64,000 nucleotides of DNA from Octopus bimaculoides (taxonomy: Eukaryota): the NCBI RefSeq assembly GCF_001194135.2, contig NC_068985.1:107368549-107432548 (forward strand), written 5' to 3'. Both the position numbers and the translations under genes were made by a program. Positions 1,552 through 41,947 of the stretch are shown here, piece after piece. The stretch's first letter is position 1. Every line of letters starts with the position of its first letter. The notes under the pieces were generated by a model that saw only the letters and a list, made by a program, of their open reading frames with translations, had not been told where the DNA came from and made no database searches.

Positions 1552-2311
1552 AATTCCCCATCACTAAACAGTGACAAAGGGTGCAAGGAGACTACCATTG
1601 CTAAAAATAAGAGTCAAAGAACTCTTTAGCTACAGAAAGCACATTTTTTGTTTACTGACAGGGGAGACAACCTCCTCGCTACAACTGGCATGCCAATTTT
1701 GCATGAAATTTAATGCTCACTAGTAAAGCTTACTTCATTGTGGCATTGAGGGTGGTGAACTTAAATTCTACCCCCATCAGTATATATAGATTTTACCATA
1801 GGAATCAGTGGCTGATTCCACAAAATGGCAATGTGAAAATTATAAAATGATTAAAATGTCTAGATGCTTACTCCATTGTGGATAGTGAAGTCATTGTTTA
1901 GTGACAGTGAATTATTTCTCTTGATTTTGAATTGCATCTAGCCACCTTATTATTTTATATAATTTCACATTACCATTTTGTGGGATCAGCCACAGATTCC
2001 TGTAGTAAAATCTATATATACTGATGGGTTAAAATTTAACTTCATCACCCACGCTGGAGTAAGCGTTATGAATTAGCATCAAATTTCATGCAAAACTGGT
2101 ATGTCAATTGAATGCTACTCAATTATGGTGGGGAGGTTGTCTCTCCTGTCAGTTAATAAAAAAAAATGTGCTTTCTGTGGCTAAAGAGTTCTTTCATTCT
2201 TATTTCTAGCCATGTTGGTGACCCCTGCACACTTTGTCATTGTTTAGTGATGGTGAATTATTTCCATTTTGGCTTTGAATTGTGTCTAGCTACCTTAATT
2301 ATTTTCTATAT
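1552..2311. repeat. Old foldback element: ~315-bp inverted arms (1552-1867, 1934-2259) plus a ~72-bp direct repeat (1890-1960, 2236-2311)
   Basis: Arms align by eye as diverged reverse complements (e.g. aaagaactctttagctacagaaagcac vs gtgctttctgtggctaaagagttcttt). Confidence 0.8.
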
Positions 2312-3357
2312 CTACCTATGTAAATCACATTAAATACTTAGGATACCAACATAAACTTAGAAAACCTATCTCAACAAATTAATTTTTCAACTTTATTGAA
2401 TTCTTTTTTGTTTTTGTTTTGAGAAGTACTCAATGTCATAATCAACCATCAGTGTAGTAGTCACAGCAAAACAACAAATAGTAAATTATATGGCGGTGGG
2501 GAGAAGAGATTTTACAGAACATTTGGGTTCATAATCTCCAAAGTCCCATAAGACAACCAGGAAAAAAAACAAAAAAAAAACAAACCAATATTGTATGAGC
2601 CCTGGAGAAGGGGCTCTTAAAAATCTGAGTTAGTACCCGGTTCTTTGATATAAACTTCCTGTTTTAAAGTGTTCTAGATTAACACAAACTATTAAAATTT
2701 CATGGTAATTTATGTTCCAAACACCAGCTTAAAAATGGTCTCTTATTCAGGCACAAGGGCAGCAATTTTGAGGAGAAAAGTTTAGTTCACACCATAAACC
2801 CATGTTTGACTACTACGTTTTTTTATTGACCATACAGGAATGAAAGGCTAAGTTGACCTCAGCAGGATTTGAAATCAAAACTTAAGGAGCAAGAACATCA
2901 GCTTAAAAATGAAAGTTATTTTTCAAAATTCTTCATTTTAAAAATTAATTGAAAGAAAGGCAGTGTATTTCAATAGAAATGTGGTAACAAAAGGATTAAG
3001 GGAGGATGCTTTGGTTTTGGTGTTAAGATACAAAATGGATAAGGTTAATCTCTCTCTGGATAGTCTATCACAGATAACATCTGCAAATTATCAAGAATCT
3101 ATTACTGACAACTAATTGACTCAAGGTTATGTAGAATGAAGTGTACTGTTTCAGAAACAACACAATACCTGGAATTTATTTGAATTTGCAATCTATGAGC
3201 AAATGGTGGTCCAAATCAATAATTTTACTTCTACCATGGGGTAATTTGTCTCTAAGATGCGTAAAATTGCACAAATGAACCACACACCATATGAATAGGA
3301 CACTAGTCTATTGCATTTAACTTCCCCTAAAAGATAAATTGAAGTACACTGAATTAA

Positions 3358-3578
3358 CCCTTTTGTTACCATATTTCTGTTGGGGTACCCTGGGTTTCTT
3401 TCAATTAATTTTAAATATAACAAAGGATTTAGTAAAATAACTTAGTTATCATTAAGCTAGTGTTAGGAACATAAATTGTGACTAAGGTTTGGTAGAAAAT
3501 TTTAATTCAGACTTTTGAAAACAAGACATTTGTACTACAGAGCTGGAGGCAGTTTCAGCTGGGTTGGCATCAAAAGGG
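3358..3578. mobile_element. piggyBac-like MITE with TTAA TSD
   Basis: TTAA-CCCTTT...AAAGGG-TTAA; ~85% similar to 7226-7439 by eye. Confidence 0.8.
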
Positions 3579-4477
3579 TTAAGTATCTTGAGCAGAAATA
3601 TAAGTCGTCTGAGATAGTAGTCTGATGGCTTTACTGAGTTGGTCACTTCATGATTAAATAATTCTTTTTTTTTTTTTTTTTTTTAGAAAAAGAATGTTAA
3701 GTAAATAATGGAGAGAGTAGGAAGGTGTGGTGGTGGTGGTGGTGGTAGTAGTAACATGAGCTGTTAATCGTTTGGTTCCTGTGTAAGAGAGTGGAACAAG
3801 GACAATGTGGAATAATGACTAACAGTCTAAATGTTTATTGATAATGTTGCCAGAGAGTACCGGAAAACAAAGAAATTAGTAGCAGAAAAAAGCTAATTCC
3901 ATTATGCTATTATTATACTGAGTACACAAATAGTGAGTGTACTAACATATTGTTGATGCCATAGATAGACTATCCAGGTAAACGGCCAAGATATAATAAC
4001 CAAGGTGGAGAGAGGGGTCTTTGTATTTGTATTGATTTTGCAGTAAATACCCTAGGGAAACACTGGAGTCTTATTTACATCAACTATAGATGGGATGTAA
4101 ACCTGAAAAGAGTACTGGGGTAAGCAACATACAAAGACAATGAAATGAAATGTGATGGTAGATTTATGTAAAGATAGGGATATTTACTTTACAATTCACT
4201 AATGTTCGGGCACTGGGTGAGAGCATACAAGGCTGTCTCGTTGTCCTGCGCGCATCTAGGACATGCTCGGCTGACGGCACTTCTGTACCTCGAACACGCA
4301 AAAGCACTGCCAGGCTAGAGAGTTTTGAAAATTATCCATCAGTCTCGGGTTTCCAAGAGTCAGACAAGTTTATCAGAGAAGACTGAAAATGAACAACCTC
4401 ATTTGTATGATGACACCCATTTACAACCAACACAGGATGTCTAAATAAGGATACACACACATATATACACATACGAC

Positions 4478-4692
4478 GAGCTGGCAGAAACGTTAGCACG
4501 CCGGGCGAAATGCTTAGCGGTATTTCGTCTGCCGCTACCTTCCGAGTTCAAATTCCGCCAAGGTCGACTTTGCTCTTCATCCTTTCGGGGTCGATAAATT
4601 AAGTACCAGTTACGCACTGGGGTTGATGTAATCGACTTAATCCCTTTGTCTGTCCCCTCTGTGTGTAGCCCCTTGTGGGTAGTAAAGAAATA
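4478..4692 (+). mobile_element. tRNA-derived SINE family B (core CATCCTTTCGGGGTCGATAAA)
   Basis: A-box-like TGGCAGAAACGTTAG and B-box-like GTTCAAATTCC. Copies at 35245-35460 and 59795-59930 (+), and 5506-5740, 6465-6662, 23690-23815, 33155-33375 and 61465-61675 (-). Confidence 0.85.
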
Positions 4693-6165
4693 ACACATAC
4701 AGACATCAGACTTCTTTCAGTTTCTGTCAACCAGATCCACACAAAAGGCTTTGGTTGGCCAAGGTGCAACACAGTGGGAATGAACTAGAGACCACATAAC
4801 TGGTAAGCAATCTTTTTAACCACACAGCTACATTCCTCCATAAAAATTGTTGTTTAACCTCAAATTAACCCTGATTGAGAAGACGTGATCAAAAGCTCTC
4901 TTGCCATCATCATTCAAGCTTTCTGCATATCAGAGACAATACTGTCTAATGCAGTCTTTATTTAAAATGGTAGGATGTGATTTGAAAGAGATTTGACTCC
5001 AATTTCTTGTACTTAAGCAACTCCTATCAATCTGCATACATAAAAGTTATGACTTGAGGAACAAAGAACAATTATCTATGATGACTGTCACACAGAAATA
5101 ACCAAGAATCGCCTGAAGGAAATCTATAAATACAAGGCAACACTAAAACACTATATGTTCAGTAGAGGAGATAACTAATTAGCTAAAATGCAAAAAGAAA
5201 CACACACACACACACTCTTTCTCTAACAGTTTGTTAGAGAAATAAAAGTCAATACTTAAGGTCAATGAACTTTCAATGAAAATCTCACCTTCAACACAAA
5301 AACTGAATAGTGAGAATCTCAAGACTAATGACTATTTTATGATCAAAGATATATACACAATTGTGCGTGTGTGTGCACCTGAGCACATGTAGTAGTTTGA
5401 ATTAGACTTGTGCAGAGCAGCTGGAATCATCAGGCAAGATTGGCTTGTATGTGTTTATACTTTGGGTGCATGGGTACTTTGTAGTCATCTTATTGGTTGT
5501 ATGTGTTATTTCTTTACTACCCACAAGGGGCTACACACAGAGGGGACAAACAAGGACAGACAAAACGGATTAAGTCGATTATACTGACCCCCAGTGCATA
5601 ACTGGTACTTATTTAATTGACCCTGAAAGGATGAAAGGCAAAGTCGACCTCGGCGGAATTTGAACTCAGAACGTAGCGGCAGACGAAATACCGCTAAGCA
5701 TTTCGCCCGGTGTGCTAACGTTTCTGCCAGCTCGCCGCCTTTGGTGGGTATGTGTATGTGTGTATATGTATGCATGCATGTACATNNNNNNNNNNNNNNN
5801 NNNNNNNNNNNNNNNNNNNNNNNNNNNNNNNNNNNNNNNNNNNNNNNNNNNNNNNNNNNNNNNNNNNNNNNNNNNNNNNNNNNNNNNNNNNNNNNNNNNN
5901 NNNNNNNNNNNNNNNNNNNNNNNNNNNNNNNNNNNNNNNNNNNNNNNNNNNNNNNNNNNNNNNNNNNNNNNNNNNNNNNNNNNNNNNNNNNNNNNNNNNN
6001 NNNNNNNNNNNNNNNNNNNNNNNNNNNNNNNNNNNNNNNNNNNNNNNNNNNNNNNNNNNNNNNNNNNNNNNNNNNNNNNNNNNNNNNNNNNNNNNNNNNN
6101 NNNNNNNNNNNNNNNNNNNNNNNNNNNNNACCTAACTTAGAGGTATCTCCCTGCCCTTATTCTTG

Positions 6166-6203
<38 letters not shown>

Positions 6204-7225
6204 CCTTTCTCAGTCATGTTCTATGCAGGCATAGGTTGGACACACAACGTAAAGATTATTTATTGTCTGGCTACTTGGAATTTCAAGAGCATATGCAATG
6301 TTGTAGATTTTTAGAGAGTAAGTTTGCAACAAATATGAATCACTCTTTGTTAGCATTTCTAAATGCAAATGTGTGCATGTGTACCTAAGAAAAAATCCAT
6401 ATCTAGAAAATAAAAGTCTATTAATATAATGGTAACTGAAATAAAATTAAAATATTTTCTACTCTAGGCACAAGGCCCAAAATTTTGGGGGAGGGCGCCA
6501 GTCAATTAGATTGACTCCAGTATGCAACTGGTACTTAATTGACCCCGAAAGGATGAAAAGCAAAATCGACCTCAACAGAATTCAAACTCTGATCATAAAG
6601 ACAGACAAAATACCGCTAAGCATTTCACCCGGTGTGCTAACGTTTCTGTCAGCTCGCCGCCTTAACAAAATAAAAATATTAAGGACCAGACATATTAAGA
6701 GTGTCAGACATAGAATGGAAGCTACAGAGTAGAAGATTCTACAACCATTAAATTAACTACCAGTACATATCTGGTACATTAACACTTTTGCTACGGCCCT
6801 TAGCTTTTAACCTTAATTTGGTTAAATTGCAATTAAAACTTTCCATTATAATTCTAGATAATAACTTTTTGTTATCTTTCTTTTATTTTTTACTTGTTTC
6901 AGTCATTAGACTGCAACCATGCTGGTGCAGACTAATCAACCCCAGTACTTATTCTATTGGTCTCTTTTGTTGAACCACTAAGTTATGGGGATGTAAATAC
7001 ACCAACACCCGTTAACAAGCGGTGGTGGAGGACAAACACACACACACACAAGACTGGAAACACTGCTTGTATGATGGTGAGGCTTGTTTACAACTGTCAT
7101 GTGATATCAGAAGTAGAGTACATACAGACAGACACACACTGGATGGGTTTCTACAGTTTCTATCTACCAAATTCACTTACAAGGTTTTGGTCAGCCTGGA
7201 GCTAGAGTAGAAGACACCCACTTAA

Positions 7226-7439
7226 CCCTTTCGTTACTGTATTTCTGCTGAGATGCTCTGTGTTTCTTTCAATTACTTTAAATATAACGAAGAATTTAGT
7301 AAAATATCTTAGTTATCATTCAGCTAATGTTAGGAACATAAATTGTGACTAAAGTTCGGTGGAAGATTTTAATTCAAAACTTATGAAAACAAGACATTTG
7401 GACTCAGAGCCGGTTTCAGTCGGGTTGCTAACAGAATGG
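7226..7439. mobile_element. piggyBac-like MITE nested inside a SINE
   Basis: TTAA flanks; the SINE sequence resumes on both sides. Confidence 0.8.
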
Positions 7440-10400
7440 TTAAGGTACCGCATACGTGGAACTGGACCTGAGACCACATGGTTGAGAAGCAAACTTCAGA
7501 GCCATACAGCTATGCCCATAAAACAAGAGATTTGCATGGAGATGTCAAATCTAAACACTTGGAATATGCTACTGTGTAAAGTACCAACACCTGGAGACAT
7601 TACTGTGCAAAAGGAATATACAAAAGCAGTGACATCAATTTCCCAAATAAAAAAAAAGCTATGATAATATAAGAGTGAGTGAGTGAGTGCATGCATGTGT
7701 GTACACAATGCCCTACCACCTCTATCTATGCATTCCTAAGAAACAACAGCTTAAAAAATACCTAACCTTCATCCAAAACACTAAAAGTCTCCAGTAGCCC
7801 AACCGAGCCCTAAAAGAAGAGTTCTTAGCTCCAACTTAATATTCTCACAATTACTTTACCTAAAATCATGAAGTAGGTATAAGTATTAAACAAATGATTA
7901 AGTGGAGATTAATATATTTACTAATAATTCACGATTGCAAATTTCAAATCAGCTGCAGGCATTCAATTATTTTTGTATAATGCTATATGTTAGTGTTCTG
8001 AACTATCTGGCATCTAGTCTATGTGGTGATTTATCTTTCCTCTGTAAGCTCTGTTCCTTAAGGGGCTAATGGAGATTTCTATTGTTTCTTTTTAAAGGGA
8101 GAAAAATTAAGTAATTTCTAAAATATTTGTTTGTTAGGAATGCATAAACAGGGGTTGATGGGGCATTTAAGGTGTTAGAATGGAGACAGTGGATTGAAAA
8201 GTAGAACAAAAGCAATATGTTCTAGCCAGTGTGTAAATCTCTTCAAAGATTGTCAACCCTAACCCTTCTGCTTTGACACACACACACAAACATGGAAAAA
8301 GAAATACCTAAGCAAGAGTAAGAGACTATAACAGCTGGCAAGACTGGTAGACAACAAAGGGAAAAAGGAAGAAAAAAAACGCTGTTTAGCAAATGTTGTC
8401 TGACTGGTTATTGACACGAGATATACATGGCTCTGCTTGTAGCCTTTGCAGGCCTTCTGAGACTAGTGAAACACAGGGTTAATATTCCTCTTGAAGGGCC
8501 AACATTCTGGAGAGAAAGAACCGAGTTTAACAGCTAAGGCAAGGTCTTGAACAAGGGTACACAATATGGGCAACAACAATGCATTTAGTGGAGGAGATAT
8601 GGAACCAAAGAAGAGGCAGAAGAGAAAGGGAAGATAAGAGAAAACATATCTGAACCAGATATTGCATTGTGACTGTGAGAACTTCATGCCAATCAAACAA
8701 CAGGCTTTTACTTTGGAAGCAGGGATCTAGGAGTCATGGGCAAAGTGTGACCCACAGAACTTTTTGAATGGTATGTCCAATGAGAAATTACCTTGAGATT
8801 GTTTTAGCAGTGCAGTCAACCTGACAAAGAACTATATTGCATACATGCTTCTCATAAAAGGTTGCCCACACCTGGTTTAGGGTGTGTGTGTATGCAAGTA
8901 AGGAGTACCATCCCACATGTGGGAGAATTATTACACTGTGGGTTTCACCTAAGCTTTGCAGTAATCATGAAGGGTTGAAGTATTTTCTGGCTCTGAAGAG
9001 GGAGGCCAATCATCATTATGTAATTTTAATGATATGGACTAGGTGTTCACTTACAGAGATCACCAGTGATTGGCTAATATGACTTCAGTTCTCTCCTCTT
9101 TCATGTATACAGCTGGGTGCTTCTAACTAAATAAAAACTAGAATGACACAAGGGCAACAATTCTAATTATGATTGAAAACACCATTCAAAACAATAAGAA
9201 AAGTCTCACTTGGCTGCTCCCCACCTCCACAAAATTCACAAGTCCATATCTAGAGTTTGTGTAGATAAAGAGTCGAAGTGTGTGTGTGTGTTTGTCAGAA
9301 TGACAACTTGGATAATTGTCAAACTATGTCATACATTATCTACGATATTTAATTAATATTAAAAGTATACCAGGAAAGTCCTAATTATTTACATGACCAT
9401 TGAACTAGTTCACAAAATAACAATGGATAAGAGTGGGGATCAAGAAAGGGGAGGGCACACTCTACAAACAGAAATATAAAATAATGCTGGTGACAAATAT
9501 TCACACACACACACACACACAATCACTGATAAGGGGCTAAATTCAAGCCACTGGACTAAGAATTAATACAGAAGGTTAGTAGTTTAAAACCTTGTCAGAG
9601 AGTAGTGGTTCCAGACTATACAAAACTTTTTGTGCCGGTTCAATCTCACCATATGGTCATGTTAGAGTAGTCACTGTTGTAATCATAGGCAAAGTATATA
9701 GTTCTGCTAACCTTAGTTTTCCTGATTGATAACTAGGAACTGTTCCCAACTCATAATCACGATGTTAATAGCAGACCAAATATCTTGTTTAAAAAAAAGT
9801 TTCTTCAGAATACCTACTTTTATATATATATATATATATATATACAAACCACATACATTATAAGATATTGGGTAATGAGGAGACCATTTAACTAGAACAG
9901 GAAAAACAGTGCTAGATGGAGACACTCAACAATAATATACAAGTTGTAATGCTTCTATGATACAAACTTTCAGTCTTAAAGTGATCTAAATTAACACCAG
10001 TTTAATAACTACAAAGTTCTTTTACTAAATTCTTCATAAGTTTCAAAAGGCAGTGTATTTCAACAGAAATGTGTTAATGTAAGAGGTTAAGTTTGAGACA
10101 CAATTTGTGTGTGAAATGGAAGTTGTGCAAGAAGAGAGTATGCCTAGAGTTTTGAGTAGGTAAAAGACTTAAGTTTATATTACAGAGGGAAGGGAAGTTA
10201 AGTAATTAAACCAGGCAAAGTCATACATATCCCCTCTGTCCATCATCTCACAGCTACATACAACTCATTAGATAACTCCACCCAACATATATAATCTCAG
10301 TGACTACATTAGTGAAATATTTCACTAACAGCTTCTAACACTACACAAATAGCTGACATGTGGCCTGACTCTGTTGATGACTTCATGAATCTCCTTTATA

Positions 10401-10659
10401 TACATTGTTTGCACAAACGCTTTTATGTGTGTGTTTCAGGCTACTCAACATAGATGTATGCATACATGATCTATATTGATATGTACATATTGTGAGAGAT
10501 ACATATAGACAGTGAAGTCTATGTGGGGGGGGGGGGACCCCCAGACAGGTGCTTGTGTGATTAAGACAGGCATATGTATATACATATGTTTAAGATCTAT
10601 AATGCTTAAATTGACATGTAATATGTGATCATCAAGCTAAAACAAAAACAATTTATATG

Positions 10660-10694
<35 letters not shown>

Positions 10695-10916
10695 CGGAGA
10701 TGTACTTGCATAGCAAGTAACCTGATCTGAGATCGTGTGCTGGAACGAAAACAATTGCAGCGTGGAAGGTGTTTATAAGCCATTTAAAATAACACACAAA
10801 ATCCGTTAGNNNNNNNNNNCACAAAATCCGTTAGATTCACTTCAACATTTAAATTTAATTTGTCAAAATATTTTCGTCGCTTTGAGACCGCAACCTGTTC
10901 ACTGACAAAATTCTGT

Positions 10917-10954
<38 letters not shown>

Positions 10955-11418
10955 GTGTGTGTATGTGCATTTGTGTATGTATATTACACACACACATTGG
11001 TTGTATGCAAATATATACACAAAGGCCTACACACAATTAAAATTCCTTTACAGCATTATAAAACAAAGTTATATTGATTCTCACACCCAGTATTGTATCA
11101 TGAATGCAGGCATGCAAATTTGTGTGTCTGTGCATGCACACAAACTTGTGTAATGACTGGCACTAGGAATACTCATACAAATCCAGAGTAACAATAGTTT
11201 AAGCCAATTCAGTGGTAACCTATTACTCTGTAGTTTCAAAGTCATGGAAACCCGAGAGCTAACAGGCCAACGGACATGTGTATATATATATATATATATA
11301 TAGTTGTGTGGTGAGAAGTTTGCTTCCGAACAACAGGGTTTCAGGTTCTGCAAGTGTCTTTTACTATAGCCTTGGGCTGACCAAAGCTTTGGTAGTCAAA
11401 AGCTGAAAGAAACCTGTC

Positions 11419-11457
<39 letters not shown>

Positions 11458-12079
11458 TCATCATCGTTTAACGTCTGCTTTCCATTCTAGCATGGGTTGG
11501 ACAATTTGACTGAGGACTGGCGAACCAGATGGCTGNNNNNNNNNNNNNNNNNNNNNNNNNNNNNNNNNNNNNNNNNNNNNNNNNNNNNNNNNNNNNNNNN
11601 NNNNNNNNNNNNNNNNNNNNNNNNNNNNNNNNNNNNNNNNNNNNNNNNNNNNNNNNNNNNNNNNNNNNNNNNNNNNNNNNNNNNNNNNNNNNNNNNNNNN
11701 NNNNNNNNNNNNNNNNNNNNNNNNNNNNNNNNNNNNNNNNNNNNNNTATATATATATATATATATATGTACGCGCCCATGCATGCCTGTGTGTGCAACAG
11801 GTTTCTTTATATATATAAATGATAGGTTTCTTTGAGTTGGCAAAAATGAGTAGTACCTGTATTTCAAAGGGCCATCCTTGTCACACTGAATCTCCCCAAG
11901 AACTACGTTAAAGGCACACATGTCTGTGGAGTGCTCAACCCACGCACGTTAATTTCATGAGCAGGTTGTTCCGCTGATCAGAGCCAACTGGAACCCTAGT
12001 CGTAGCAACTGATGGAGTGCCATTAAGATCCACTGCATGGCTACAGTCCAATAACTGAAACAAAATATATATATATATA

Positions 12080-13299
12080 TAGGGTGTCCCCAAAAAATGT
12101 ATACACACTTTTGCAGCAGATAACTCAAATGATGTTTTTTCTTTCCAGATTAAACCCATTGGAATTAATGATGGTAGTCAGACTAAACCTTGAACAAAGG
12201 AAATTCATTCTAAAATGCTACTGGAAGTGTGAAAACAGTTTAGGAGGGGGGTTTCAAACAGATCCACCAACACGACTTACCATCACTCGAATTAGAGATA
12301 AGTTTGAAGTCGATGGAACTGTTCAGAATGTCCACGAGAAGCGTTCTGAAAGACCACGACCATCAACACCCACCACAAAGCAAGAAGGAGTGCTGGAAGC
12401 GAATCACCAAAGTCCAAGAAAATCTTTGCGGCAAGTGAGTCATGAGGTAGGTATTTCAAAATCGTCTGTCCAATGCATTTTGAAGCATTGTCAATGGAAA
12501 AGTTACATTCCAAGATTAGCCCATGTTATTAATGACGACGATTCAGACTGAAGAGTGCAGCATTGTGAGTGGTACTTGGCACGTTACATAGAAGATGCAC
12601 ACTTTCCAACAAAAATTGTGTGGAGTGATGAGGCCACATTCAAATTAAATGGTTCAATTAACCATCATAATTGTACCTACTGGAGACCTGAGAATCTGCA
12701 TGTTGTGGTGGAACACCATGTTAATTTACCAGGAGTTACAGTGTAGTGTGGTTTATCACCAAGAGGATTAATTGGACCATTCTTTTTTTGAGGCTACTGT
12801 GACTGGTCCTGTTTTCTTGATCTTGCTGCAATTGTCTGTCATGCCAAGCATAAGAGAAGACTTTGAAAATGAGTTTATTTTCAGCAAGATAGGGCACCCT
12901 CACACTACCATCGCGATGTTAGATCTTTCCTTGATGAGATCTTGCCAAACAGGTGGATTAGATGAAGGGGTTTCGTTTAATACCCTCCATGTTCACCAGA
13001 CCTCACTCTACTAGACTTTTTTTTTTATGGGGATAGCTAAAAGACAAAGTCTATGCTATGAAACCTGCAACAGTCACTGATTTGAGAGCAGCCATTGAAT
13101 GAGAATGCACACAAATACCAAACGAATTGTTTAGTGATGCTTGCGATTTCATTGCTTCACATTGTCAGCAGTGCCTGGACCAGAATGGATGTCAGTTTGA
13201 AAACAGGCATTGACAAAACAATAAAATAATGTCTGTAGATTCTATTAAATTCACTTTACAATTATTTAAAGTGTGTATACATTATTTGGGGACACCCTG
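12080..13299 (+). mobile_element. Full-length decayed Tc1/mariner, DD41D (rosa/Visitor-type) transposase
   Basis: TIRs AGGGTGTCCCCAAA...TTTGGGGACACCCTG in a TA context. WSDEATF and FQQDRAPSH...[10 protein letters not shown] motifs, with 41 residues between the 2nd and 3rd Asp. In-frame stops and frameshifts. Confidence 0.88.
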
Positions 13300-16200
13300 T
13301 GTATATAGATATATATATATACTAGTACAACCAGTATAGAAGAGGTTATCATGTTCTCAATAAGACCAAAATGTTCTCTATATTCTACACTGTCATAATT
13401 CATTTGTCAACCACTTTACAGAATGTAATCTTGGTAACAGCTTGGCAAGACTAAAGGAACCTCTTTAACCTACTAGGTCTCCGTTCTTTCATTCACTTGG
13501 ACTTAGTGGTCTCAAAAAAGTGTGATGGAAGAGTAACTAAAAGAGTAATGGAATAGAACAAGAAAATGAATGAAGAGAATGCCAGGAGAGAGTGATAGAA
13601 GATAGAGTATTTGAAGTGAGAGTGTGATGGACAACATTAAAAGGGGATGTTAATAATGAGAGTAATGACACAGAAGAGTGATGGCTAACAATAAAGAGTG
13701 ATGATAAACTGGGAAATGAATACAAACATGGGTGGTGTGATGTTGGGTGGGAAGAATAGCACATGGAGATGCAAATGTGAACATACATAATAGTCAGGAG
13801 AGAACCAAATGTTACATACACACCAATATTCATCACCACCACTACCACCATCTTCCCATACTTGCATAGATTGGACAGGTCCTCTCCAGCACAACACTTT
13901 TCCACAAGTCACAATTCCTTGTCATTTCATCAGCCTTCACCACTTAGTCCCATGTCTTTCTTGATCTCCCCCCTCAAAAGGTTCCACCCACTTGGAGCAA
14001 GTGACATGTTCACTCCAGTGTTATCTTTTCTAGCACATAACTTCCAATTACTTTTATGCCCTATCGATTCATTTGTGCCATTGTTCATGCTTTCCTGCAT
14101 TCTTAGTTCATGTCTTGTTAACATGCAACGTTGCACTTTGTACCATCTCAGAGAGAAACTCTTTGTTGCCAGCAAATGTAATAATCCCCTGAACTTTTCC
14201 CCATCACATTTGTATTTCTGGCTGCAATACTTTCAGAACACACACCACCACTACTACTAATTGAGTTACCTAGGCAATAAAAGCTATCAACTACAACTAG
14301 GCAGGACCTTCCAAATATTTATAAAATCATGCATATCTTACTACTACTCTATGTCTGCCATATATACAGCCTACCTTTCCCTGATAATGTGTCCATGATC
14401 CCTTGTGCACCTTTAGTTATACTGGGCATATCATATAGATGTGATCCCTTGGAAATTCATATGGACTCCTTTTCTGTACAGTGAGCACAGCCACTCTATC
14501 CATCTTTAAAAAATGAAGACCTATTTTATAATAATAATTACAAAACATAACATTGAATAGATACACTCATCACAATAAAGAAAATGTGATAAAAACTTAA
14601 CGGTAGAAGTGACAGGTTAATAAATCCCTATTGTGAACATTACAACAGTGGAGTAGAAGTAAACTAGAAACTATTTTAAATGTGGTTTTTACAAGACAAT
14701 TTAAATACAAAAATAAGTTTAAAATTTTTTTTATTTAATTACAGTAAAATAAAGATTTCATACATTAGCAAAATTCTTCACAAATTTCAAAAGGGTACAA
14801 CTGAGGAAACTGACTAGCACTTTATGTAAATGACATCTGCCACGTAAGTAGTGTTCTACTGGTTGCTTTATAATAACATAGCAGTGCACTACTATTTATA
14901 TTACAATCATCATCATCATCATTATCGTTTCACAGCCGTTTTCTACGCTGGCATGTGTTGCATGGTTTAGCAAGACCCAGTGAGCTGCATCAAGCTCCAG
15001 TGTTAGATCTTGGGAAAGGAGCATAATAATTAAGCTTGATCCCAATACTTGACTTATCAATCCCAAATAATCATCATAATTCTCTCAACTAAACAGACAG
15101 CATGGTGATGCTTATACTTTCCCAAAGTGAAATAACTTTCAAACAGAAATCAAAAGGTTCCTTTCCCCAAAACTTAAGCTCTTCCTCTTCTGAATGCAGG
15201 ATGTAAAGGGATGCAACTAAATACCAGAGGTATTTTGCTACTCGCAGATCTTATACTGCTACCACTAACCATTATCACAAAGTGGTGACCCCTAATATTT
15301 TATTCTCTCTTAAACAATTTCCCCTACAAAGAAGGTTAATCAAAATATCCACAAAAATGGATAAAGACGCAGGTATGGCTATGTGATAGGAAGTTAGCTT
15401 CCCAACCACAAGTGCCTTCTACTATAGCTTCAGGTTGACCAAAAATCCTTGAGTGGAATTAGTGGACAGAAACCGATAGAAACCCATTATGTGTGTTGCG
15501 TGTGTGGTTTGTTTACATCTCCGTAACCTAGTTCAGCAAAAGAAAAAAAAAAAAGAAAAAAAACTAGTACCAGACTTAAAAAAGAAAAAGGTAAGGAGAT
15601 CGATTTGTTCGAATAGGCCAATGACTGAAACAAGTAAAAAAAAAAAACTGGAAAAAAAAGACAAGTTTTAAGTGGAACTGATTTTCTTTTACCAATATAC
15701 GACTGGTATTAGAAAGAATATTAACGCCAAAATAATTCGTTTCATTTGTTTGTGTAAGCAGAATGATGATTTCAAGGCAAACGAAAACGTACTCATTTCA
15801 ATTTGATACTTTGTTTTATCGATTTCTATTCGCGAAACTGCTAAGTTACGGAGCAGGAAAAGATGTTATTAGACACCTGTACACATGCACACACAAGGGC
15901 TTCGTCAAAATTTCTGTCAACTGGATTCCACGTCTAAGGTGAAGTCACTTGCCCAGTACTGCGCAGTGACATCGAACAAAGTGCTAGCGAACTTTTCAAC
16001 TATACAAACAGGCTTATCCATGACGAAAATAAATGAAATTTTAAAAGAATAAACTGGGCATAATGTTTATTATCTCAGTTTATCACCACATAAATTGAGA
16101 CAATAAGCGAGGTGAGATTATAATCGTTAAATAAACAGATGTGATTAGAGTGGACAAAATATTGAGAAAAACAGCTTTATTGTTTGGAATTTCTAAATTG

Positions 16201-16418
16201 CTATTTAGACCTCTACTCAATCTTCCAAGGCGCAGTCTTCAGTCCCTTTTAAAATTTTAGACGTGACTATAAACGAAAGCTGAATGTGTTTAAAAAAACC
16301 AACAAAAAATAAAAGACATGAATGGTTAGGTAGTAAGTAGCAGCTGAAGGGAAGAAACCAGCTGACATTTTGGTTGTGGTGGTGGTGATTGAGAGCTGTA
16401 CACGTGGGCCAACTTGCT

Positions 16419-16465
<47 letters not shown>

Positions 16466-16895
16466 NNNNNNNNNNNNNNNNNNNNNNNNNNNNNNNNNNN
16501 NNNNNNNNNNNNNNNNNNNNNNNNNNNNNNNNNNNNNNNNNNNNNNNNNNNNNNNNNNNNNNNNNNNNNNNNNNNNNNNNNNNNNNNNNNNNNNNNNNNN
16601 NNNNNNNNNNNNNNNNNNNNNNNNNNNNNNNNNNNNNNNNNNNNNNNNNNNNNNNNNNNNNNNNNNNNNNNNNNNNNNNNNNNNNNNNNNNNNNNNNNNN
16701 NNNNNNNNNNNNNNNNNNNNNNNNNNNNNNNNNNNNNNNNNNNNNNNNNNNNNNNNNNNNNNNNNNNNNNNNNNNNNNNNNNNNNNNNNNNNNNNNNNNN
16801 NNNNNNNNNNNNNNNNNNNNNNNNNNNNNNNNNNNNNNNNNNNNNNNNNNNNNNNNNNNNNNNNNNNNNNNNNNNNNNNNNNNNNNACACGCATG

Positions 16896-16933
<38 letters not shown>

Positions 16934-17690
16934 CACGCACACACACACATTTGAGAGCCCCGTACCATGCACGAAATTTGACTCATTTTTATAACTTCAG
17001 CCCATTAAATTTTTTTTAAATGTACATATGTATTTCTCTCTCTTCCCGTCCCTATATATATATATATGTATATGTGAAACTACTTTACAAGACAAGGAAG
17101 AGTCAGTGAAAGAGCGCCAACGTGGTCGCTCAATTGTCTAGAAATAGCAGCTAAATCTTCCGCGAATCACACCATACTGCCTTGGAAAAGGTGAAAAATA
17201 AAGTATGAAAGTACTGGTTAATGCTAACAGATACACTGGATAAAAAATCTGATTGGAAATCCTTTTATGACAATAAGCCTACTCGATCAGGACTGACCTA
17301 GAACCTAATTTCACTCACATTGGAGGGAAAGCATGGGTATCACAACATTCCATGCCTTTCACCTAAAATACAAGATCTTTGTGACGTATGAAAAAGAAGA
17401 CTAATATTAGATTTCTAAATTCAAATCCTGCCAAAAGTTGTTCGTCCTTCAGATCTTTAAAGGTACCCAGGTTAAGAATAAATGTCAGTTATATATTGCA
17501 TTTTCCTTATCAACTTAGCCGCTTCCCTTTATACTGTAGTTAGAAATTATTGCTGGAACGCCCAACAAAAAAATGCCTTACGATATTCTAGTTACATGCT
17601 TTTGCACTGCTAGTTCGTATCTCGCTAAGGTCGACTTTGCTTTCCTTCTTTATTGTGTCCATAGGGCCCAATCAAACCGATTATGGGTCC

Positions 17691-18051
17691 AGATGGACTA
17701 TATGTAATCTGAACCTTTCCCCCCTTATTATTTTTTTTTTTTGCGGAATCCCACGTTTTAGGCTATGGAGATTCCGATTCTGAAATTTTTTTTTCAAAAA
17801 TCTCAATTTCAAAATTTCGACCCCACCCCCACCCCCATTTTTATATAGATCCACAGGGTAAACCTAACCCTAACACTAGTTTTGTGAGATTTGGCTGTTA
17901 TTTCTAGCATGTAAATAGCCTGCTTGGTGGCGGGAGGGAATTGAAACAATTTTTTTTCAGAATCGGAATCTCCATAGCCTAAAACGTGGGATTCCGTAAA
18001 TAAAATTAATAAATAAGGGGGAGAAAGGTTCAGATTACATATAGCCCGTCT
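17691..18051. mobile_element. MITE with ~100-bp terminal inverted repeats
   Basis: agatggactatatgtaatctgaacc...ggagattccgattctgaa is mirrored at the right end. Internal AACCTAACCCTAAC. Confidence 0.8.
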
Positions 18052-19593
18052 CCGCCCGATTATGTCCTACTCACTGCACATGTGGTTTTGTGCTTCTTTC
18101 GAGATCACTATTATTAGCAATGTAGTGCTACTGAAAACTGGGTGTTTTGCCATATTTCTTGACGATAACATCTGTTAAATCTTACACGGCTTTAACTGCT
18201 TGGTAGGCATTTGGGCTGATGCAACAGTCTGAGATGTCAACTACCTCCACCACCATCTGGGAGAGGAAGGCTCGATCAACCAGAATGGTAAAATTAAGAA
18301 AACTATGCGCATGTTAATAGGGGTGGGTGGGGGTAACAGAGATAAAGGGGTGGAACAATGAAAATACACTCAGTTAATGAAGGGCACTAACTAAGAGAGA
18401 TGCACTATTAGGGAGGAACAGAGGAATTCAGTTAACCAACAATGTAGACTTCAGTTAAATGACAACTTGAGATGCATCGCCAATATTCTTAGACTATTAA
18501 GTGTGCGTGTTTATACACACACGTAGATTTTTTTTTTCATCAAAGGCAACGGACGCACAGTCTTATTATCTAAAATTTTTGTTCTTTAGTACTTTCATTA
18601 GCGAAGAAAACAAGAAATTATTAGAAAATGATCATCTTCCATCGCGAAAGTAGAGGGCAGTAGACAGCCGGTTAAGACACTATAACGTGGTGGTTTCCAA
18701 ATTAGCAAAAACCTTCCCCAAAAACAATATTAAAGAAAGAATTTTCCCTCGTATTATTCTTCCTTCGTCAGTGTTGGACAAGTTTTAAAATTATCTTAAT
18801 TTTACTTCACATGGCAATTTGTCCGCCGCCGCCTCAACCCTCACAGGCCACCCACCTATGAAACAAACAACTGTTAAAGCCATCCAGTGATGACGTTTCC
18901 ATTAATTCCAACAGGATCTTCGCAAATAATTTTGCGTCTAAATAAGACCCGCTTTTGATGGATTTTAACAAGTATTTAAGTTAAAAGATGTTAATATTGG
19001 ATAACTATTTTCAATAAATAATTAAATAACACTCAATTTTCACCCAGAAAACCTTTTTTATCTTTTTCTCATTGAAATACCTTCTCTATTACGATGAACC
19101 CAGTATACAGTACTTCAAGCATTTCTAGTAACCTGCCGGTAATCTAAAATTTATTTCATTCTATAGTTAGTCCGAAACTTGGTTTCATATACTCCTTTCA
19201 TCAATACACCTGTCTATTTATATAGCAGAGGATAAAATACAAGGTTTTATTTTTGTACCTGTTTCTAAGAAAGGGGGGGGGGGTAGCAGTATTAACGAAA
19301 AGCGCCAATATGTCCTCTTTTAAAATCGAAAGGCATAAATCAAGGAAATTTGGACCGCTTGTCCCATTAAATCGAGCGACAGCGTAGGTGGTGGAAGACT
19401 TAATCCAGTTGTGATCAGATAACGAAATCAGAATGTCCTTATACGTTCGTGTTGGCTGCTCTTTTATAACATGCCCCGAAAAAACATTATTATAAAGACA
19501 GAAGCATGAAACAAGAGAGAGGTATACCAATAAGTTAACTGCGACAGTAATCAGAAGAGAGTCCATCACTACATGTTGGGAGATTGTTTATAA

Positions 19594-19738
19594 CAGTCAT
19601 GGGCAAAATGCGGCCCGCGGGACTTTCTGAATAGCACGACTAACAAAAAAATTACTTTGAATTATTTTAGTGTGGATCGCTTGATGATGAGCCATGTCTC
19701 ATGCAGCCCACTTCTCGAAAAAGGTTGCCCATGCCTTG
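19594..19738. mobile_element. Short hAT-like MITE (related copy at ~8731-8874)
   Basis: CAGTCATGGGCAA...TTGCCCATGCCT termini with a GCGGCCCGCGGG subterminal motif. TSD not preserved. Confidence 0.6.
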
Positions 19739-20932
19739 ACCAGGTGGGGTCTAAGCACGAGGTGCCTTTAATATAGACCACGCGTGTCAACGAGTTTGTC
19801 AATCGCCCAGCTTGGTCAGCGCGCACGTCGAAACTCTCTCTTCAATAAACTCCCTATCGCTTCTCAAATAGAGACACATGGTTTAAATTATCGGAAATCG
19901 TGGCCCCATACAGTAAAAGGGACTGACCAATAAAGAACAGAATACTTATACGTTTTATTTTATTTTTTTAACTGTAAGGGTGATTTCAGAAATAAAGAAT
20001 ACGTAAGGTTGCATAAAGAACTCCGCCAGAAATTGTAGCCGATTTGACATAGATATAATTTCTTTTATTAGATGATAATAATTTACCTTTATACCTTGAG
20101 TCTACCTAAACAAAGCTGAGTGGGGTCACCCAAACATTACGTTGGTTTTCAGTTATGGATCACCTTCTACGGCATTAGATAATCACGTCTTACATAAGTC
20201 GGGGGTGGGCATACGTACATCCGTTACACGAAACAGCAATTGTTTGGCCCCAGGCCGCCCTTATCGAGTAGACTCTATGATCATACCGTTACAGAGAGAC
20301 CAACTTTTTTTTTTGTTAGTATATCAGGGGATAAATTTGAGAATGGATCGATAGGGTGCGATTTAAGGAAGATTTAGTTAATATTTCTAGCAAGCCGAAT
20401 GAATGCACACAGGCTCCCGCGTTGGCTCGTACATAAAATGTATTAAGCACACAGTAAATAGATTAACATACACCAAATATATTACCACCTGATAAATGGC
20501 TAAGAACCATGTATTAAATTATAATTTTATTTGTTTATTTACAGTAAGAAATGTAGCCGAGATAATGTGTATCTAATGACTAATTACTACCTCTTAGCGA
20601 CTAATATGGCATGGGATTTAAAATATATCAATGGTAACTTATCAAAAAAAATAAGAAGAAATAGTGAAGACAAACGGTATCGGTAGAAGTAACGGAATAG
20701 AATATGAAAAGAAATTCAGGCGAGAGAGAGAGGTGAGTGTGTGGATCATGTGAAATCCCGCCACATTTGTAATAATCAAAGCCGGCCATGCGACGGCAAC
20801 TGGTGTCAATAGCCGACATAGGCGGACACAAAGACAGGGAACGATTTTACACGTCAAGAATTACTCAAACTGGTCACCCATTTTTGGGCCACAAAATGCT
20901 CACGCCTGCAAAAATTGCGAAAGAAAACTTAC

Positions 20933-20954
20933 TTTTTCTTTTTCCCTTGGGCAT
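20933..20954 (-). CDS. IFRD1: IFRD-family (interferon-related developmental regulator) coding exon 1: MPKGKRK plus 1 nt
   Basis: Minus strand reads ATG CCC AAG GGA AAA AGA AAA A|gtaagt, a strong donor in phase 1. It joins in frame to the exon at 506-631. MPK plus a basic stretch is the typical IFRD N-terminus. IFRD1 vs IFRD2 orthology is not resolvable here. Confidence 0.8.
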
Positions 20955-21082
20955 TATTCTCCTATATGTTGTGTCCTTCTATAGCTAAAAGATCTTACTA
21001 ATTGGTCAGACGTGCGTATATGGAAGTCAGATTCATATAAGTAATAGAATTTGTTGATTTTGTTGGTGAGGAACATACACAT
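20954..21082 (-). CDS. Upstream ORF (42 aa, MCMFLTNKINKFYYLYESDFHIRTSDQLVRSFSYRRTQHIGE) in the IFRD 5' leader; its stop overlaps the main ATG (TAATG)
   Basis: Manual translation gives 129 nt open from ATG at 21082 to TAA at 20956-20954, sharing nt 20954 with the IFRD ATG. An in-frame stop lies 18 nt upstream of the uORF ATG. Confidence 0.7.
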   Translation of the reverse strand: MCMFLTNKINKFYYLYESDFHIRTSDQLVRSFSYRRTQHIGE

Positions 21083-21179
21083 GGTTCGTACAATGTATTA
21101 GCTGTAGCTATACAGTACTGACAAGGTCAAGCGAGCAGCATCATGGGTAATTTCACTGCGGCTACATTAATTTAACTAA

Positions 21180-21436
21180 CATTATATGCTCTTATATTTT
21201 ATAAACAGACTCCAAAAAAGAAAATTTATAAAGAATTTGCTGCGAAATACAGATGAAATAGTAGCGATAATTTCTTAAAAGAAAAAGAAGAACGTTACGG
21301 AAACTTTTCCGGTTGTTTCCGTAGTTTACACGTGAGACTGAGAAAAAGTTGAAGTGAAAGTTTCCAGCTAAGTGAAAGTTATTCGACTTGACGCGATCTA
21401 TTAAAAATTCTGACGAAATAGTTTAGTTGCAGTACA
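21180..21436. promoter_or_regulatory. Putative bidirectional promoter between IFRD (-) and the 419-aa ORF (+)
   Basis: Short head-to-head interval with locally raised CpG. Contains TTCCGG (ETS-like), CACGTG (E-box, 21329-21334) and two AAGTGAAA motifs. No TSS data. Confidence 0.5.
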
Positions 21437-22696
21437 ATGTATCATCGTCCGGGAGATCGTTTTAACTTCGTCCATCCTAGTAGCGCTGAGAACAACAACA
21501 ATAATAATACCAACCAGGTCCGAAGATATCCCACAAACAATAAAAACATCAATTATTGGCGTCCACCTTCTACCAACAGTAGAATTAACAGTCCATATAT
21601 ACATTCATGGAATGGAAAAAATATAGGATTTGGATACCCTTCATTTTCACATTCGATGCATTATGGTTTTCAAACTTCGAATAACCAAAAACTAATTAAT
21701 ATATTGCCGCCTAGTGTTCCAGTACATCATACATCCCTCAATAACTCTGGTTATTTTAGAGTTCCGTTGCGCAAACCGTTCAACAACTACCAAAAAACCA
21801 AACCCGGTGTTAAAATTTCTGCTAAAAATAAAGCGAAACTTTTAAAGAGATCGAAGATGCAGCGCCTGAAAGCAGCCAAAAAACGCACGACAAACGCACA
21901 ATCTTCCAAACAACAAAATAAATTTAAACATAATCCTCCAAGGAAAAGGGCTGCTAGAAAAGCAAGATGGAAAAAAATCGATTTGAAATCTAAAACTCGA
22001 AATGCATCCCATGAATCCACTCCTCAGGAAAAGCCGAACTTAACCAACCCTACGTCAAGTACAGCATTGGTAAGTGCTTGGTTAACGAACAACTTTGAAA
22101 CACCTTTTTCATCCAGACTGAGTAATCGTTCTTTCAGTTTAGAGACTATAGATAATTCTACAGATGCAGTGGTACCTTTGTATGCAGCCGGTTGCCCCTC
22201 AGACTTAAGGAATGTCGAACACGGTGCGACGAGTTTTACTCTTCCTGATAATATATCAATGTGGTCAGGAATGGAATCTTGTAGCTTAGTCGAAAGCCAG
22301 GAATTGCAACATTCCAAGCCAGCAAACTTCGGTAAACTTCTGACCACAGAAAGTCTTTTACAACTAGAGAAAGAAGAGTTAGTTGCTTTAGTACTCAGTC
22401 TTCAGAAACAAGTTCTCTCCGACAACAACCGAACTTGCAGAGTTGCAAATACTTCCGCCGTCCACTCCAGTTTGCCAGACAATGAAAGGTCCGATGTACA
22501 TCCCAGTAACCCTATGGAATCTAATCCTAGTTCCTATCCGAATCAGAGCTGTAGCAGAATGTCCGTGAAAGCCGACCCAGAGTTACTAAATTCAAATTGT
22601 GCTGACATTTCATCACCAGGCGACATGATGCCAACGATGACCGAAACAACGACAGATGTGTCTGGAATTAAACAGGAAACAAAACCTCTCTGTTGA
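21437..22696 (+). CDS. Intronless 419-aa ORF: Asn/Tyr/His-rich N-terminus, Lys/Arg-rich basic region (aa ~120-188), short coiled coil (aa ~303-332); possibly a divergent HEXIM-like protein
   Basis: A 1260-nt open frame in AT-rich DNA where non-genic ORFs are usually under 130 aa. No recognisable TE motifs. Divergent from IFRD across ~350-480 bp. Confidence 0.75.
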   Translation: MYHRPGDRFNFVHPSSAENNNNNNTNQVRRYPTNNKNINYWRPPSTNSRINSPYIHSWNGKNIGFGYPSFSHSMHYGFQTSNNQKLINILPPSVPVHHTSLNNSGYFRVPLRKPFNNYQKTKPGVKISAKNKAKLLKRSKMQRLKAAKKRTTNAQSSKQQNKFKHNPPRKRAARKARWKKIDLKSKTRNASHESTPQEKPNLTNPTSSTALVSAWLTNNFETPFSSRLSNRSFSLETIDNSTDAVVPLYAAGCPSDLRNVEHGATSFTLPDNISMWSGMESCSLVESQELQHSKPANFGKLLTTESLLQLEKEELVALVLSLQKQVLSDNNRTCRVANTSAVHSSLPDNERSDVHPSNPMESNPSSYPNQSCSRMSVKADPELLNSNCADISSPGDMMPTMTETTTDVSGIKQETKPLC

Positions 22697-27202: not shown

Positions 27203-28125
27203 CTAAGACACTCTCAGCCTTCTTGACAGTTTTTTAAACATGATTTGTCCAACCCAAATTGCTGGGTGGACTTCAGTGCCTACCTGCACAGCCTGCCACA
27301 ACTCTCGGCAAGAGAGGCGGAGTGCTGCAAAGGTGCCATCATGGCGGCGGAAGTGAAGGATGCGATGGCGGGATGCTCGAGGGACAACTCTCCGGGTTTG
27401 GATGGTCTGCCCTACGAGCTTTACAACTGTATGCCAGACTTGTTTGGAGACGTCTTGGTGGCAGTGTACTGCAACTGGCAGCAGAACGGGAGCATTCCCG
27501 GTTTTGTGAGCCAAGGAGCCGTAACGCTGCTGAAGAAAGATCCAAACAAGGGGGACGTCATAGATAACTTTAGGCCCATCACTCTGCTCAATGCAGACCT
27601 GAAAATTTTGACCAAAGGTGTTAGCTAAGCAGTTGGCGCTTGTCATCAAGGCGCAAACGTGCGCCGTGCTGGGCCGGAGCATCCATAACAACCTCCATCT
27701 GATGCGCTACATCATAGAACGGGTAGTTAAGAAGCCTGACATGAGTGGGGCCCTGATCAATTTGGATCAATCGAAAGCTTTCGATAGGGTAGACCATCAA
27801 TACTTGGAGGCTATCCTCATAGCAGCCGGCTTCGGTCCAGTTTTCCGCAGCTGGATGGCTGCCTTGTACAGAGGCATCCATTCGGTAGTTCGCGTCAATG
27901 GGCATCTATCAAGACCTTTCCACATTGCACGCTTGGTCCATCAGGGATACCCCCTCTCGTCGCTTCTGTACGTATTGACTCTCGAGCCACTACTGCGTCT
28001 AGCCACAAGCACATCGAGCTGGTCGGCGAGACACTGAAAGACCACGAAGCGGTGACGGGAGTGAAAATCAACGGGGAAAAGTTGGTGGGCTTGCGGCTCG
28101 GCACCTGGAGAAGCAAGCCCATACC
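27203..28125 (+). mobile_element. Tx1/L1-like LINE reverse transcriptase fragment with frameshifts and an internal deletion
   Basis: SPGLDGLPYELY, RPITLLNADLKIL, LDQSKAFDRVDH, QGYPLSSLLYVL.LEP, then directly TGVKINGEK; the YADD segment is missing. High-GC island. Confidence 0.88.

Positions 28126-41888: not shown

Positions 41889-41947
<59 letters not shown>

Follow-up and report, generated by a model that had tools for sequence, protein, structure and literature searches.

A conserved-peptide upstream open reading frame at the start codon of the cephalopod IFRD1 orthologue

How might translation be governed when an upstream open reading frame (uORF) ends on the very start codon that it precedes? 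The question is raised by the minus strand of a 64,000-nucleotide (nt) stretch of the Octopus bimaculoides genome (assembly GCF_001194135.2, contig NC_068985.1, positions 107,368,549 to 107,432,548; hereafter the window, in whose numbering all coordinates are given), which carries the 5' end of the gene for interferon-related developmental regulator 1 (IFRD1, here also IFRD). A reading made from the sequence only had claimed a 42-codon uORF whose stop overlaps the IFRD start codon as TAATG, and the coordinates bear this out. The uORF (20954..21082, minus strand) begins with ATG, comprises 42 codons plus TAA and encodes the peptide MCMFLTNKINKFYYLYESDFHIRTSDQLVRSFSYRRTQHIGE; its stop codon (20956..20954) and the IFRD ATG (20954..20952) have one A in common. 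In the resulting stop-start overlap (20952..20956, minus strand) the main AUG has A at -3 and C at +4. An in-frame TAA lies 18 nt 5' of the upstream ATG (uATG), and the uORF therefore cannot be extended upstream. Based on the evidence presented below, we consider it fairly probable that this is a conserved-peptide uORF which is translated and, acting in cis, gates the IFRD start codon on which it ends.

The identity of the downstream gene follows from several observations. The window is 100% identical to CM046605.1, in which the IFRD1 gene (XP_014772819.1, product name interferon-related developmental regulator 1) begins at the same ATG, and the coding sequences (CDS) of the IFRD genes annotated in O. 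vulgaris, Argonauta hians and O. bimaculoides, which encode the Pfam domains IFRD and IFRD_C, all start there; the RefSeq and GenBank gene ranges that we used cover the CDS only. The orthologous loci of O. vulgaris, Argonauta hians and a third Octopus species (the last from Logan assemblies) were fetched by means of a divergently oriented neighbour ORF, and in the O. vulgaris and Argonauta hians genomes the adjacent gene carries the Pfam domains IFRD and IFRD_C. The coding part of exon 1 (20933..20954, minus strand) is 22 nt long and encodes MPKGKRK plus 1 nt, in phase 1: the main ATG is followed by CCC AAG GGA AAA AGA AAA A and then by a gtaagt donor, with its GT at 20932..20931. Exon 2 (506..631, minus strand), which was identified among the stop-to-stop ORFs, has its acceptor AG at 633..632 (ttgacag/CA) and a phase that matches exon 1, and its Argonauta counterpart encodes a peptide that is 93% identical. 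Intron 1 thus spans 20932..632, or 20.3 kb, and the joined exons read in frame as MPKGKRK-T-GRRGAGSRPSSDDE (also read as MPKGKRK-T-GRRGAGSRPSSDDEIDTPDNQSVVSSISDDGYFHPIAEEGH).

The window extends over no IFRD exons other than exon 1 and exon 2, the latter poorly conserved. Translated searches of the window with human IFRD1 and IFRD2 (tblastn, with approximate queries) found no IFRD exon, a protein search with the 49-residue IFRD N-terminus gave no candidate, an exhaustive HMMER search with IFRD exon 2 gave no match, and exact look-up of the uORF peptide matched no called gene. A chimeric protein query, made of the octopus N-terminus and the motifs that are invariant between IFRD1 and IFRD2 with the rest masked, ranked cephalopod IFRDs at the top and also retrieved Logan transcript contigs of cephalopod IFRDs.

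Whether the uORF is part of the mRNA is answered by these contigs. A spliced Octopus mRNA contig (L019, from SRR3401912) has a 5' end equivalent to window position 21108, 26 nt 5' of the uATG, and contains a uORF identical to that of the window, followed by TAATG. It then crosses the junction between exons 1 and 2 as GAAAAA/CAGGTCG, that is, GAAAAA/CAGGTCGAAG, exactly as predicted, and it aligns to the O. bimaculoides locus in 12 blocks. Since the contig contains both the whole uORF and the predicted junction, there is no transcription start site (TSS) or splice acceptor 3' of the uORF start. In particular, use of the acceptor ttttagctatag near 20980, which the sequence-only reading had named together with a downstream TSS as what would speak against a leader uORF, is rejected, as the contig runs through this site without a break. 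More than 20 further independent RNA-seq contigs from three distant coleoid species support a leader with the uORF, and the placement of the uORF within the mRNA leader is thereby upheld.

Together with these species, seven taxa could be compared: O. bimaculoides, O. vulgaris, the third Octopus species, Argonauta, and coleoid species A (contigs L007-L016), B (L017 and L018) and C (L020-L029). The IFRD proteins of species A-C are 72-73% identical to that of Octopus. Because the 90% cluster of species B and C includes the NCBI entry CAE1300168.1, species A-C are probably decapodiforms.

The contig ends also suggest where transcription begins. In species C, nine of the ten contigs shown start within about 15 nt of GGCAGTACTG, the counterpart of the octopus initiator-like (Inr-like) element TCAGTACTG (21121..21113), and only one of the ten (L020) reaches 114 nt further 5'. 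The 5' ends of those nine contigs and of L018 from species B lie in CTTGG/GGCAGTACTG/GTACTG/GTAGC, the homologue of octopus CTTGTCAGTACTGTATAGC. Two species A contigs (L009 and L010) have an adapter fused to their 5' end 24 nt upstream of the uATG. From this homology and from the contig ends we infer a main TSS cluster at 21108..21125 (minus strand) around the Inr-like TCAGTACTG, which would place the uAUG about 37 nt from the cap. The distance from the uAUG to the contig 5' end is at least 26 nt in Octopus and 24-43 nt in the other coleoids. The leader segment upstream of the uAUG (21083..21119, minus strand, about 37 nt) is only about 50% identical between octopus and the distant coleoids, except beside the AUG, where the context GAACCAUGUG (A at -3, U at +4) is invariant in all taxa.

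The stop-start overlap is just as persistent. TAATG is identical in six of the seven taxa, namely the three Octopus species and species A, B and C. The exception is Argonauta, in which the region reads TAATAATG / GGATAATAATG (RNA UAAUAAUG): a GAA->TAA change at the last codon makes the uORF one codon shorter, and the first stop falls 2 nt before the AUG. Juxtaposition of stop and start, as an overlap or a 2-nt gap, is thus found in 7/7 taxa, and the length of the uORF varies only from 41 to 43 codons. The uORFs of species A-C have 43 codons (MCIFLLASKIQKFYYLYECDFHIRTSDQLIRSFSYKRTQHIGE and MWMFLLASKIQNFYYLYESDFHIRTSDQLVRSFSYKRTQHIGE) and all terminate in GGAGAATAATGCC. We presume that the uORF has persisted through the deepest divergence of extant coleoids, over several hundred million years.

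Within the uORF, conservation is distributed unevenly. Codons 1-11 (21050..21082, minus strand) form a variable N-terminal part (MCMFLTNKINK / MCIFLLASKIQK / MWMFLLASKIQN) with 67% nucleotide identity to the distant coleoids and a one-codon indel. Codons 12-42 (20957..21049, minus strand) form a near-invariant C-terminal part, FYYLYESDFHIRTSDQLVRSFSY(R/S/T/K)RTQHIGE, and together with the stop codon (96 nt, 21049..20954) they are 94-95% identical at the nucleotide level. Among these last 31 residues, 30 are invariant or show a single change; only residue 35 is free (R/S/T/K). When Octopus is compared with species A-C, the uORF peptide is 81-84% identical and the IFRD protein 72-73% identical, so the uORF peptide is better conserved than the protein encoded downstream of it.

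The substitutions are of the coding type. Between Octopus and Argonauta the uORF has undergone five synonymous and two non-synonymous changes, in addition to the GAA->TAA change, which gives a non-synonymous rate (dN) of 0.020, a synonymous rate (dS) of 0.264 and a dN/dS of 0.076 (Fisher P 0.002); in the other two frames, the synonymous to non-synonymous ratios are 1:7 and 1:4. Between Octopus and species A-C, dN is 0.08-0.09 and dS 0.41, for a dN/dS of about 0.2 (P 0.005-0.008). The corresponding comparison of the IFRD CDS of the same transcripts gives a dN of 0.18-0.19 with saturated synonymous sites (proportion of differing synonymous sites, pS, 0.82). Judged by these substitution patterns, the uORF peptide is under purifying selection, with a dN/dS of about 0.1-0.2. 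The cross-species comparison and dN/dS estimate that the sequence-only reading had called for thus came out in favour of a conserved coding uORF in other cephalopods.

Could the frame nevertheless be open by accident, within a block that is conserved as an element of RNA or DNA, for example a binding site for a protein, a promoter-proximal element or a structure linked to ADAR editing? The invariance of third positions in 24 of the last 31 codons, along with the high nucleotide identity of this part, is what such an element would leave behind. However, the variable columns in these codons are distributed as 2/2/7 over codon positions 1/2/3, the uORF frame is the only one in which dN/dS falls significantly below 1, and ATG, frame, length and stop are kept in all seven taxa, even across the one-codon indel. 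Furthermore, the island of conservation between Octopus and Argonauta (about 21148 to about 20915, 80-97% identity) corresponds to exon 1 plus its splice donor and not to promoter DNA, with promoter and intron at 40-70% identity, and the block has neither an Rfam family nor a stable fold. We therefore regard an incidental frame as very improbable. In dinucleotide-preserving shuffles of the 165-nt leader (n=20000), an ORF of at least 40 codons ended within -1..+3 nt of the main ATG in 117 (0.6%), and overlapped it exactly as stop and start in 52/20000 (0.26%); conservation is much stronger evidence for the uORF than this count.

A second AUG inside the uORF, in the +1 frame and in the weak context UAUAUGA, opens a 12-codon ORF (MNLTSIYARLTN, 20998..21036, minus strand) that ends 43 nt 5' of the main AUG and is found in all taxa compared. 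It could be a by-product of nucleotide conservation. The mRNAs of species A-C (L007-L018 and L020-L029) contain an extra 10-codon uORF (AUGAACCAUG or MNHV at its beginning) whose start codon precedes the main uAUG by 7 nt and whose frame runs across it. In octopods the start position reads ACG, and the decapod-type extra uORF AUGAACCAUG is hence absent from them.

How might a uORF of this kind act? At termination, the ribosomal exit tunnel encloses a nascent chain of roughly 31 residues. A variable N-terminus followed by about 31 invariant residues that run into the stop codon is the pattern of an arrest peptide, and arrest by the nascent chain would be the most likely mechanism. We propose that most 43S complexes would initiate at the uAUG, with translation of all 42 codons and termination at the UAA that overlaps the IFRD AUG. 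Since the conserved residues match the length of chain in the tunnel, the C-terminal peptide probably slows elongation or termination, and the terminating or paused 80S ribosome would then sit on the main AUG and also block trailing scanning complexes. IFRD would be made by the smaller share of ribosomes that bypass the suboptimal uAUG through leaky scanning, perhaps with the addition of a few that reinitiate on the overlapping AUG.

This proposal resembles arrest-type uORFs, such as the fungal arg-2/CPA1 arginine attenuator peptide, the DDIT3/CHOP uORF and the conserved-peptide uORFs of plants (CPuORFs), in that the peptide is under purifying selection and that conservation is focused on the C-terminal 30 or so residues at the stop codon, here residues 12-42. 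In those systems the arrested ribosome bars scanning to the main ORF (PMC10275272, PMC6033536). The octopus uORF differs from them in that it has no known arrest motif or known effector and in that the predicted arrested ribosome would cover the main AUG itself.

Several points weigh against a gate based on the conserved peptide. No known arrest motif occurs in the peptide, and a Pfam scan of it gave no match. The case for translation of the uORF, stalling and a stress response in cephalopods draws on sequence, transcript contigs and the human precedent, and that for the placement of the TSS on contig ends. Moreover, synonymous sites in codons 12-42 are almost frozen, compared with the saturated synonymous sites of the CDS, which exceeds what selection on a peptide needs. 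It follows from the 94-95% nucleotide identity of this part that some additional RNA-level constraint exists, and the peptide model leaves it unexplained. Finally, the zero-nt spacing between stop and start could equally serve reinitiation.

The last two points bear on an alternative in which coupled termination-reinitiation is the main route to IFRD: the 40S subunit would stay on the mRNA after UAA and restart at the overlapping AUG, with the last 96 nt of the uORF as a tethering signal. Termination-reinitiation at UAAUG is known from caliciviruses, influenza B virus and the SART1 retrotransposon, and the UGGGA motif (motif 1) of the viral termination upstream ribosomal binding sites (TURBS) is complementary to 18S ribosomal RNA. 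The octopus locus shares the UAAUG pentanucleotide with the TURBS systems (caliciviruses, influenza B M1/BM2) and SART1, along with strongly conserved sequence over the roughly 90 nt before it. The presence of UAAUG or, in Argonauta, of a 2-nt gap in 7/7 taxa is consistent with reinitiation. So is the extreme conservation, at the nucleotide level, of the 96 nt that lead up to this site, a position at which signals of the TURBS type are found (PMC10275272). The octopus locus differs from those systems in that the upstream ORF is short (42 codons), lies in a cellular 5' leader and lacks both UGGGA and detectable structure.

TURBS motif 1 was rejected, as UGGGA is absent from the sense strand of leader and uORF (nt 1-155 of the spliced contig L019) and its sole sense match in the contig is at nt 735. 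No stable structure of the leader was detected either: relative to shuffles, the minimum free energy (MFE) has a z-score of +0.76 for the leader and -0.52 for the last 116 nt, and RNAalifold gives -9.5 kcal/mol with 0 compensatory pairs, from sequences that are too invariant for covariation to inform. No Rfam family matches the conserved block, and a known RNA family was rejected on this basis. In addition, the efficiency of reinitiation drops as uORF length grows, 42 codons being long for efficient reinitiation, and even viral TURBS allow only 3-20% (PMC10275272). Coding-type substitutions are not expected of an RNA signal alone. For human IFRD1, the data from translation complex profile sequencing (TCP-seq) favour leaky scanning, with scanning complexes and ribosomes that queue inside the uORF (PMC7619398). 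Thus, coupled termination-reinitiation as the principal route to IFRD appears unlikely to us.

A different alternative takes the selection on the peptide at face value and supposes a bicistronic mRNA: its 42-residue product would be a stable, trans-acting micropeptide, and IFRD translation would be affected only secondarily, if at all. Purifying selection over more than 30 residues and a peptide better conserved than IFRD itself would suit such a product, and the human IFRD1 uORF encodes an annotated conserved microprotein that was a hit in viability and Perturb-seq screens (PMC10032668). The peptide was predicted by AlphaFold, in a single-sequence run, as one helix with a mean predicted local distance difference test (pLDDT) score of 80, which is weak evidence in favour; a long single helix is a common default for short peptides in such runs, and with a predicted template modelling (pTM) score of only 0.43 we judge the model uninformative. 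The want of a Pfam match, already mentioned, also speaks against a micropeptide. Furthermore, the invariant juxtaposition of stop and start and the invariant uAUG context indicate a role in cis, and a variable N-terminus with a C-terminus invariant up to the stop is the pattern of a cis-acting arrest peptide. Although we consider a product that acts chiefly in trans improbable, a trans-acting micropeptide would possibly be compatible with a role in cis.

The interpretation that we prefer, a cis-acting gate, has a precedent in the orthologous vertebrate gene. The uORF of vertebrate IFRD1 (PC4/TIS7) was reportedly treated by Zhao and colleagues in 2010. It sensitises the mRNA to decay. The human IFRD1 leader has a single conserved uORF of about 53 codons, 19 nt from the cap at its start and 43 nt short of the CDS at its end, with A at -3 and U at +4 of its uAUG (Andreev and colleagues, 2015; PMC4383229). 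This uORF represses a reporter about 8-fold and suffices for resistance to eIF2 phosphorylation, by a mechanism that requires an unstructured 5' end and is not delayed reinitiation of the ATF4/GCN4 type (PMC4383229). The parallel with a mammalian IFRD1 uORF of about 50 codons, which the sequence-only reading had drawn, is apt. The cephalopod uORF is very probably a switch of translation parallel to the human one, and by analogy basal IFRD synthesis would be low and resistant to, or induced by, phosphorylation of eIF2-alpha.

The likenesses extend beyond the orthology of the gene, whose main ORF begins with MPK.K(K/R)(R/K) in both groups. In both there is one long uORF (41-43 codons in cephalopods, 45-52 in vertebrates) a few tens of nt from the cap, its AUG has A at -3 and U at +4 (ACCAUGU in cephalopods; AAAAUGU, AAGAUGU or AACAUGU in the four vertebrates compared), the leader is unstructured, and the C-terminal residues are conserved up to the stop, as IG(E) followed by the stop codon. 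The spacing differs, as the distance from stop to main AUG is 43 nt in human and a second mammal and 97 nt in another vertebrate, whereas it is -1 or +2 nt in cephalopods.

The peptides differ as well. We compared vertebrate uORF peptides, the human one taken from PMC10032668 and three others from Logan mRNA contigs. Their invariant parts are MYR..SQ..G.S and, at the C-terminus up to the stop, RR.SKKCSSIG; the vertebrate peptide is conserved at both ends with a variable middle, whereas the cephalopod peptide is variable in its first 11 residues and frozen thereafter. A resemblance of the octopus peptide to the vertebrate one in a Y-x3-F pattern and a C-terminal RRT had been proposed, and it does not survive alignment: octopus and human peptides give a Smith-Waterman score of 21, which is no better than shuffles (P 0.24 local, 0.30 global), alignment of the cephalopod and vertebrate profiles by hhalign gives a probability of 0.6%, and the residue after RR is T, S or F in vertebrates, so that the T of RRT is not conserved there. 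Homology of the uORF peptide to that of vertebrates was rejected on these shuffle and profile values; the two are unrelated by detectable homology.

A bolder scenario is conceivable, which we offer as doubtful. IFRD mRNAs may already have possessed a single long, translated uORF of regulatory function before protostomes and deuterostomes split and have retained it, with a peptide that has diverged past recognition, and coleoids may have rebuilt this uORF as a device with no spacer, in which the last 96 nt would be at once an arrest peptide and a cellular RNA signal, independent of TURBS, that holds the post-termination 40S subunit on the overlapping AUG and allows the coupling to be tuned by stress.

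Full-text literature searches found no description of an IFRD uORF outside vertebrates or of cephalopod uORFs of this kind. What is new here, as judged from sequence comparison, is a conserved-peptide uORF on an IFRD1 orthologue that has an unrelated peptide and a zero-spacer geometry of stop and start. Human IFRD1 is among the few mRNAs in which one uORF demonstrably suffices to confer resistance to phosphorylation of eIF2-alpha, and whether queuing, stalling or leaky scanning is responsible is debated. The cephalopod orthologue would represent an independent or a very old version of the same design, in which the terminating ribosome would sit on the main start codon. It could thus serve as a natural experiment to separate the effects of the peptide from those of spacing, and IFRD is a candidate marker gene of the integrated stress response for cephalopod biology.

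Two smaller ORFs further upstream had also been noted, and their coordinates are correct. The first (21127..21144, minus strand) has five codons and encodes MMLLA (ATGATGCTGCTCGCTTGA), with its ATG within the conserved motif CCCATGAT; the second is a minimal ATG-TAG (21163..21168, minus strand) that lies 5' of the transcript ends. Neither is conserved as an ORF. Counterparts of the first encode MMLLA, MMLRA or MMQRA, have 15 codons in Argonauta and read MILVVG in species C, and the ATG of the second is ACG in O. vulgaris and absent in Argonauta. Given the inferred TSS cluster at 21108-21125, both lie 5' of most transcripts; indeed, they are upstream of nearly all contig 5' ends, and the 5-codon ORF is included in just one of the ten species C contigs shown, the long L020. 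The region of the 5-codon ORF is therefore probably promoter DNA for most transcripts.

These facts bear on a switch of the ATF4 type with two uORFs. The leaders of ATF4 and GCN4 resemble that of octopus IFRD in that the gene is linked to stress and an inhibitory uORF reaches the main start codon. They differ in that they need a short 5' uORF permissive for reinitiation, and the sole octopus candidate (21144..21127) is not conserved and lies upstream of the main TSS cluster. We rejected such a switch because almost all transcripts begin downstream of the 5-codon ORF, whose peptide and stop codon differ between taxa.

The motif CCCATGAT lies about 28 nt 5' of the Inr-like TCAGTACTG. Together with the adjacent TGACCTTG (21122..21147, minus strand) it is kept in Octopus, in Argonauta (as CGACCTTG) and in the long leader of species C. 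From position and conservation, CCCATGAT and TGACCTTG look like core-promoter or transcription-factor sites and not like the start of a uORF. A TATAAA lies farther 5', at 21230. On the other side of the promoter, the divergent neighbour ORF (21437..22696, plus strand) encodes 419 amino acids without a Pfam domain, and its homologues are confined to octopods (O. vulgaris, Argonauta and the Logan Octopus). About 320 nt separate its ATG from the putative IFRD TSS, and the two genes accordingly have a bidirectional promoter in common. A promoter block conserved between Octopus and Argonauta contains an E-box CACGTG (21334..21329) and a palindrome, ACGGAAAC...GTTTCCGT (21322..21297).

No exon 3 was found within reach at the Argonauta locus, and a long interspersed nuclear element (LINE) stands in its place. 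IFRD intron 2 of Argonauta (L002, 27..2831, minus strand) holds an uninterrupted LINE-type ORF of about 935 amino acids that resembles endonuclease and reverse transcriptase (RT) and appears to have been active recently. Inside octopus IFRD intron 1, an ORF at 12084..12548 (plus strand) has helix-turn-helix domains typical of transposases (DUF4817, HTH_32). Beyond the neighbour ORF, a reverse-transcriptase fragment at 27618..28034 (plus strand; Pfam RVT_1, E 9e-11) is accompanied by RT-like ORFs on both strands (27203..28037), a region that represents a LINE remnant within a locally GC-richer stretch. Two plus-strand ORFs of 223 and 302 amino acids (41766..42434 and 43340..44245), with no firm Pfam match and only a weak one to DNER_C, are probably exons of another plus-strand gene. 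Assembly gaps (runs of N) make up 4.2% of the window, for example at 5790..6130, 11530..11790, 16450..16900 and 58730..59330, and (TA)n/(CA)n microsatellites occur on the flanks.

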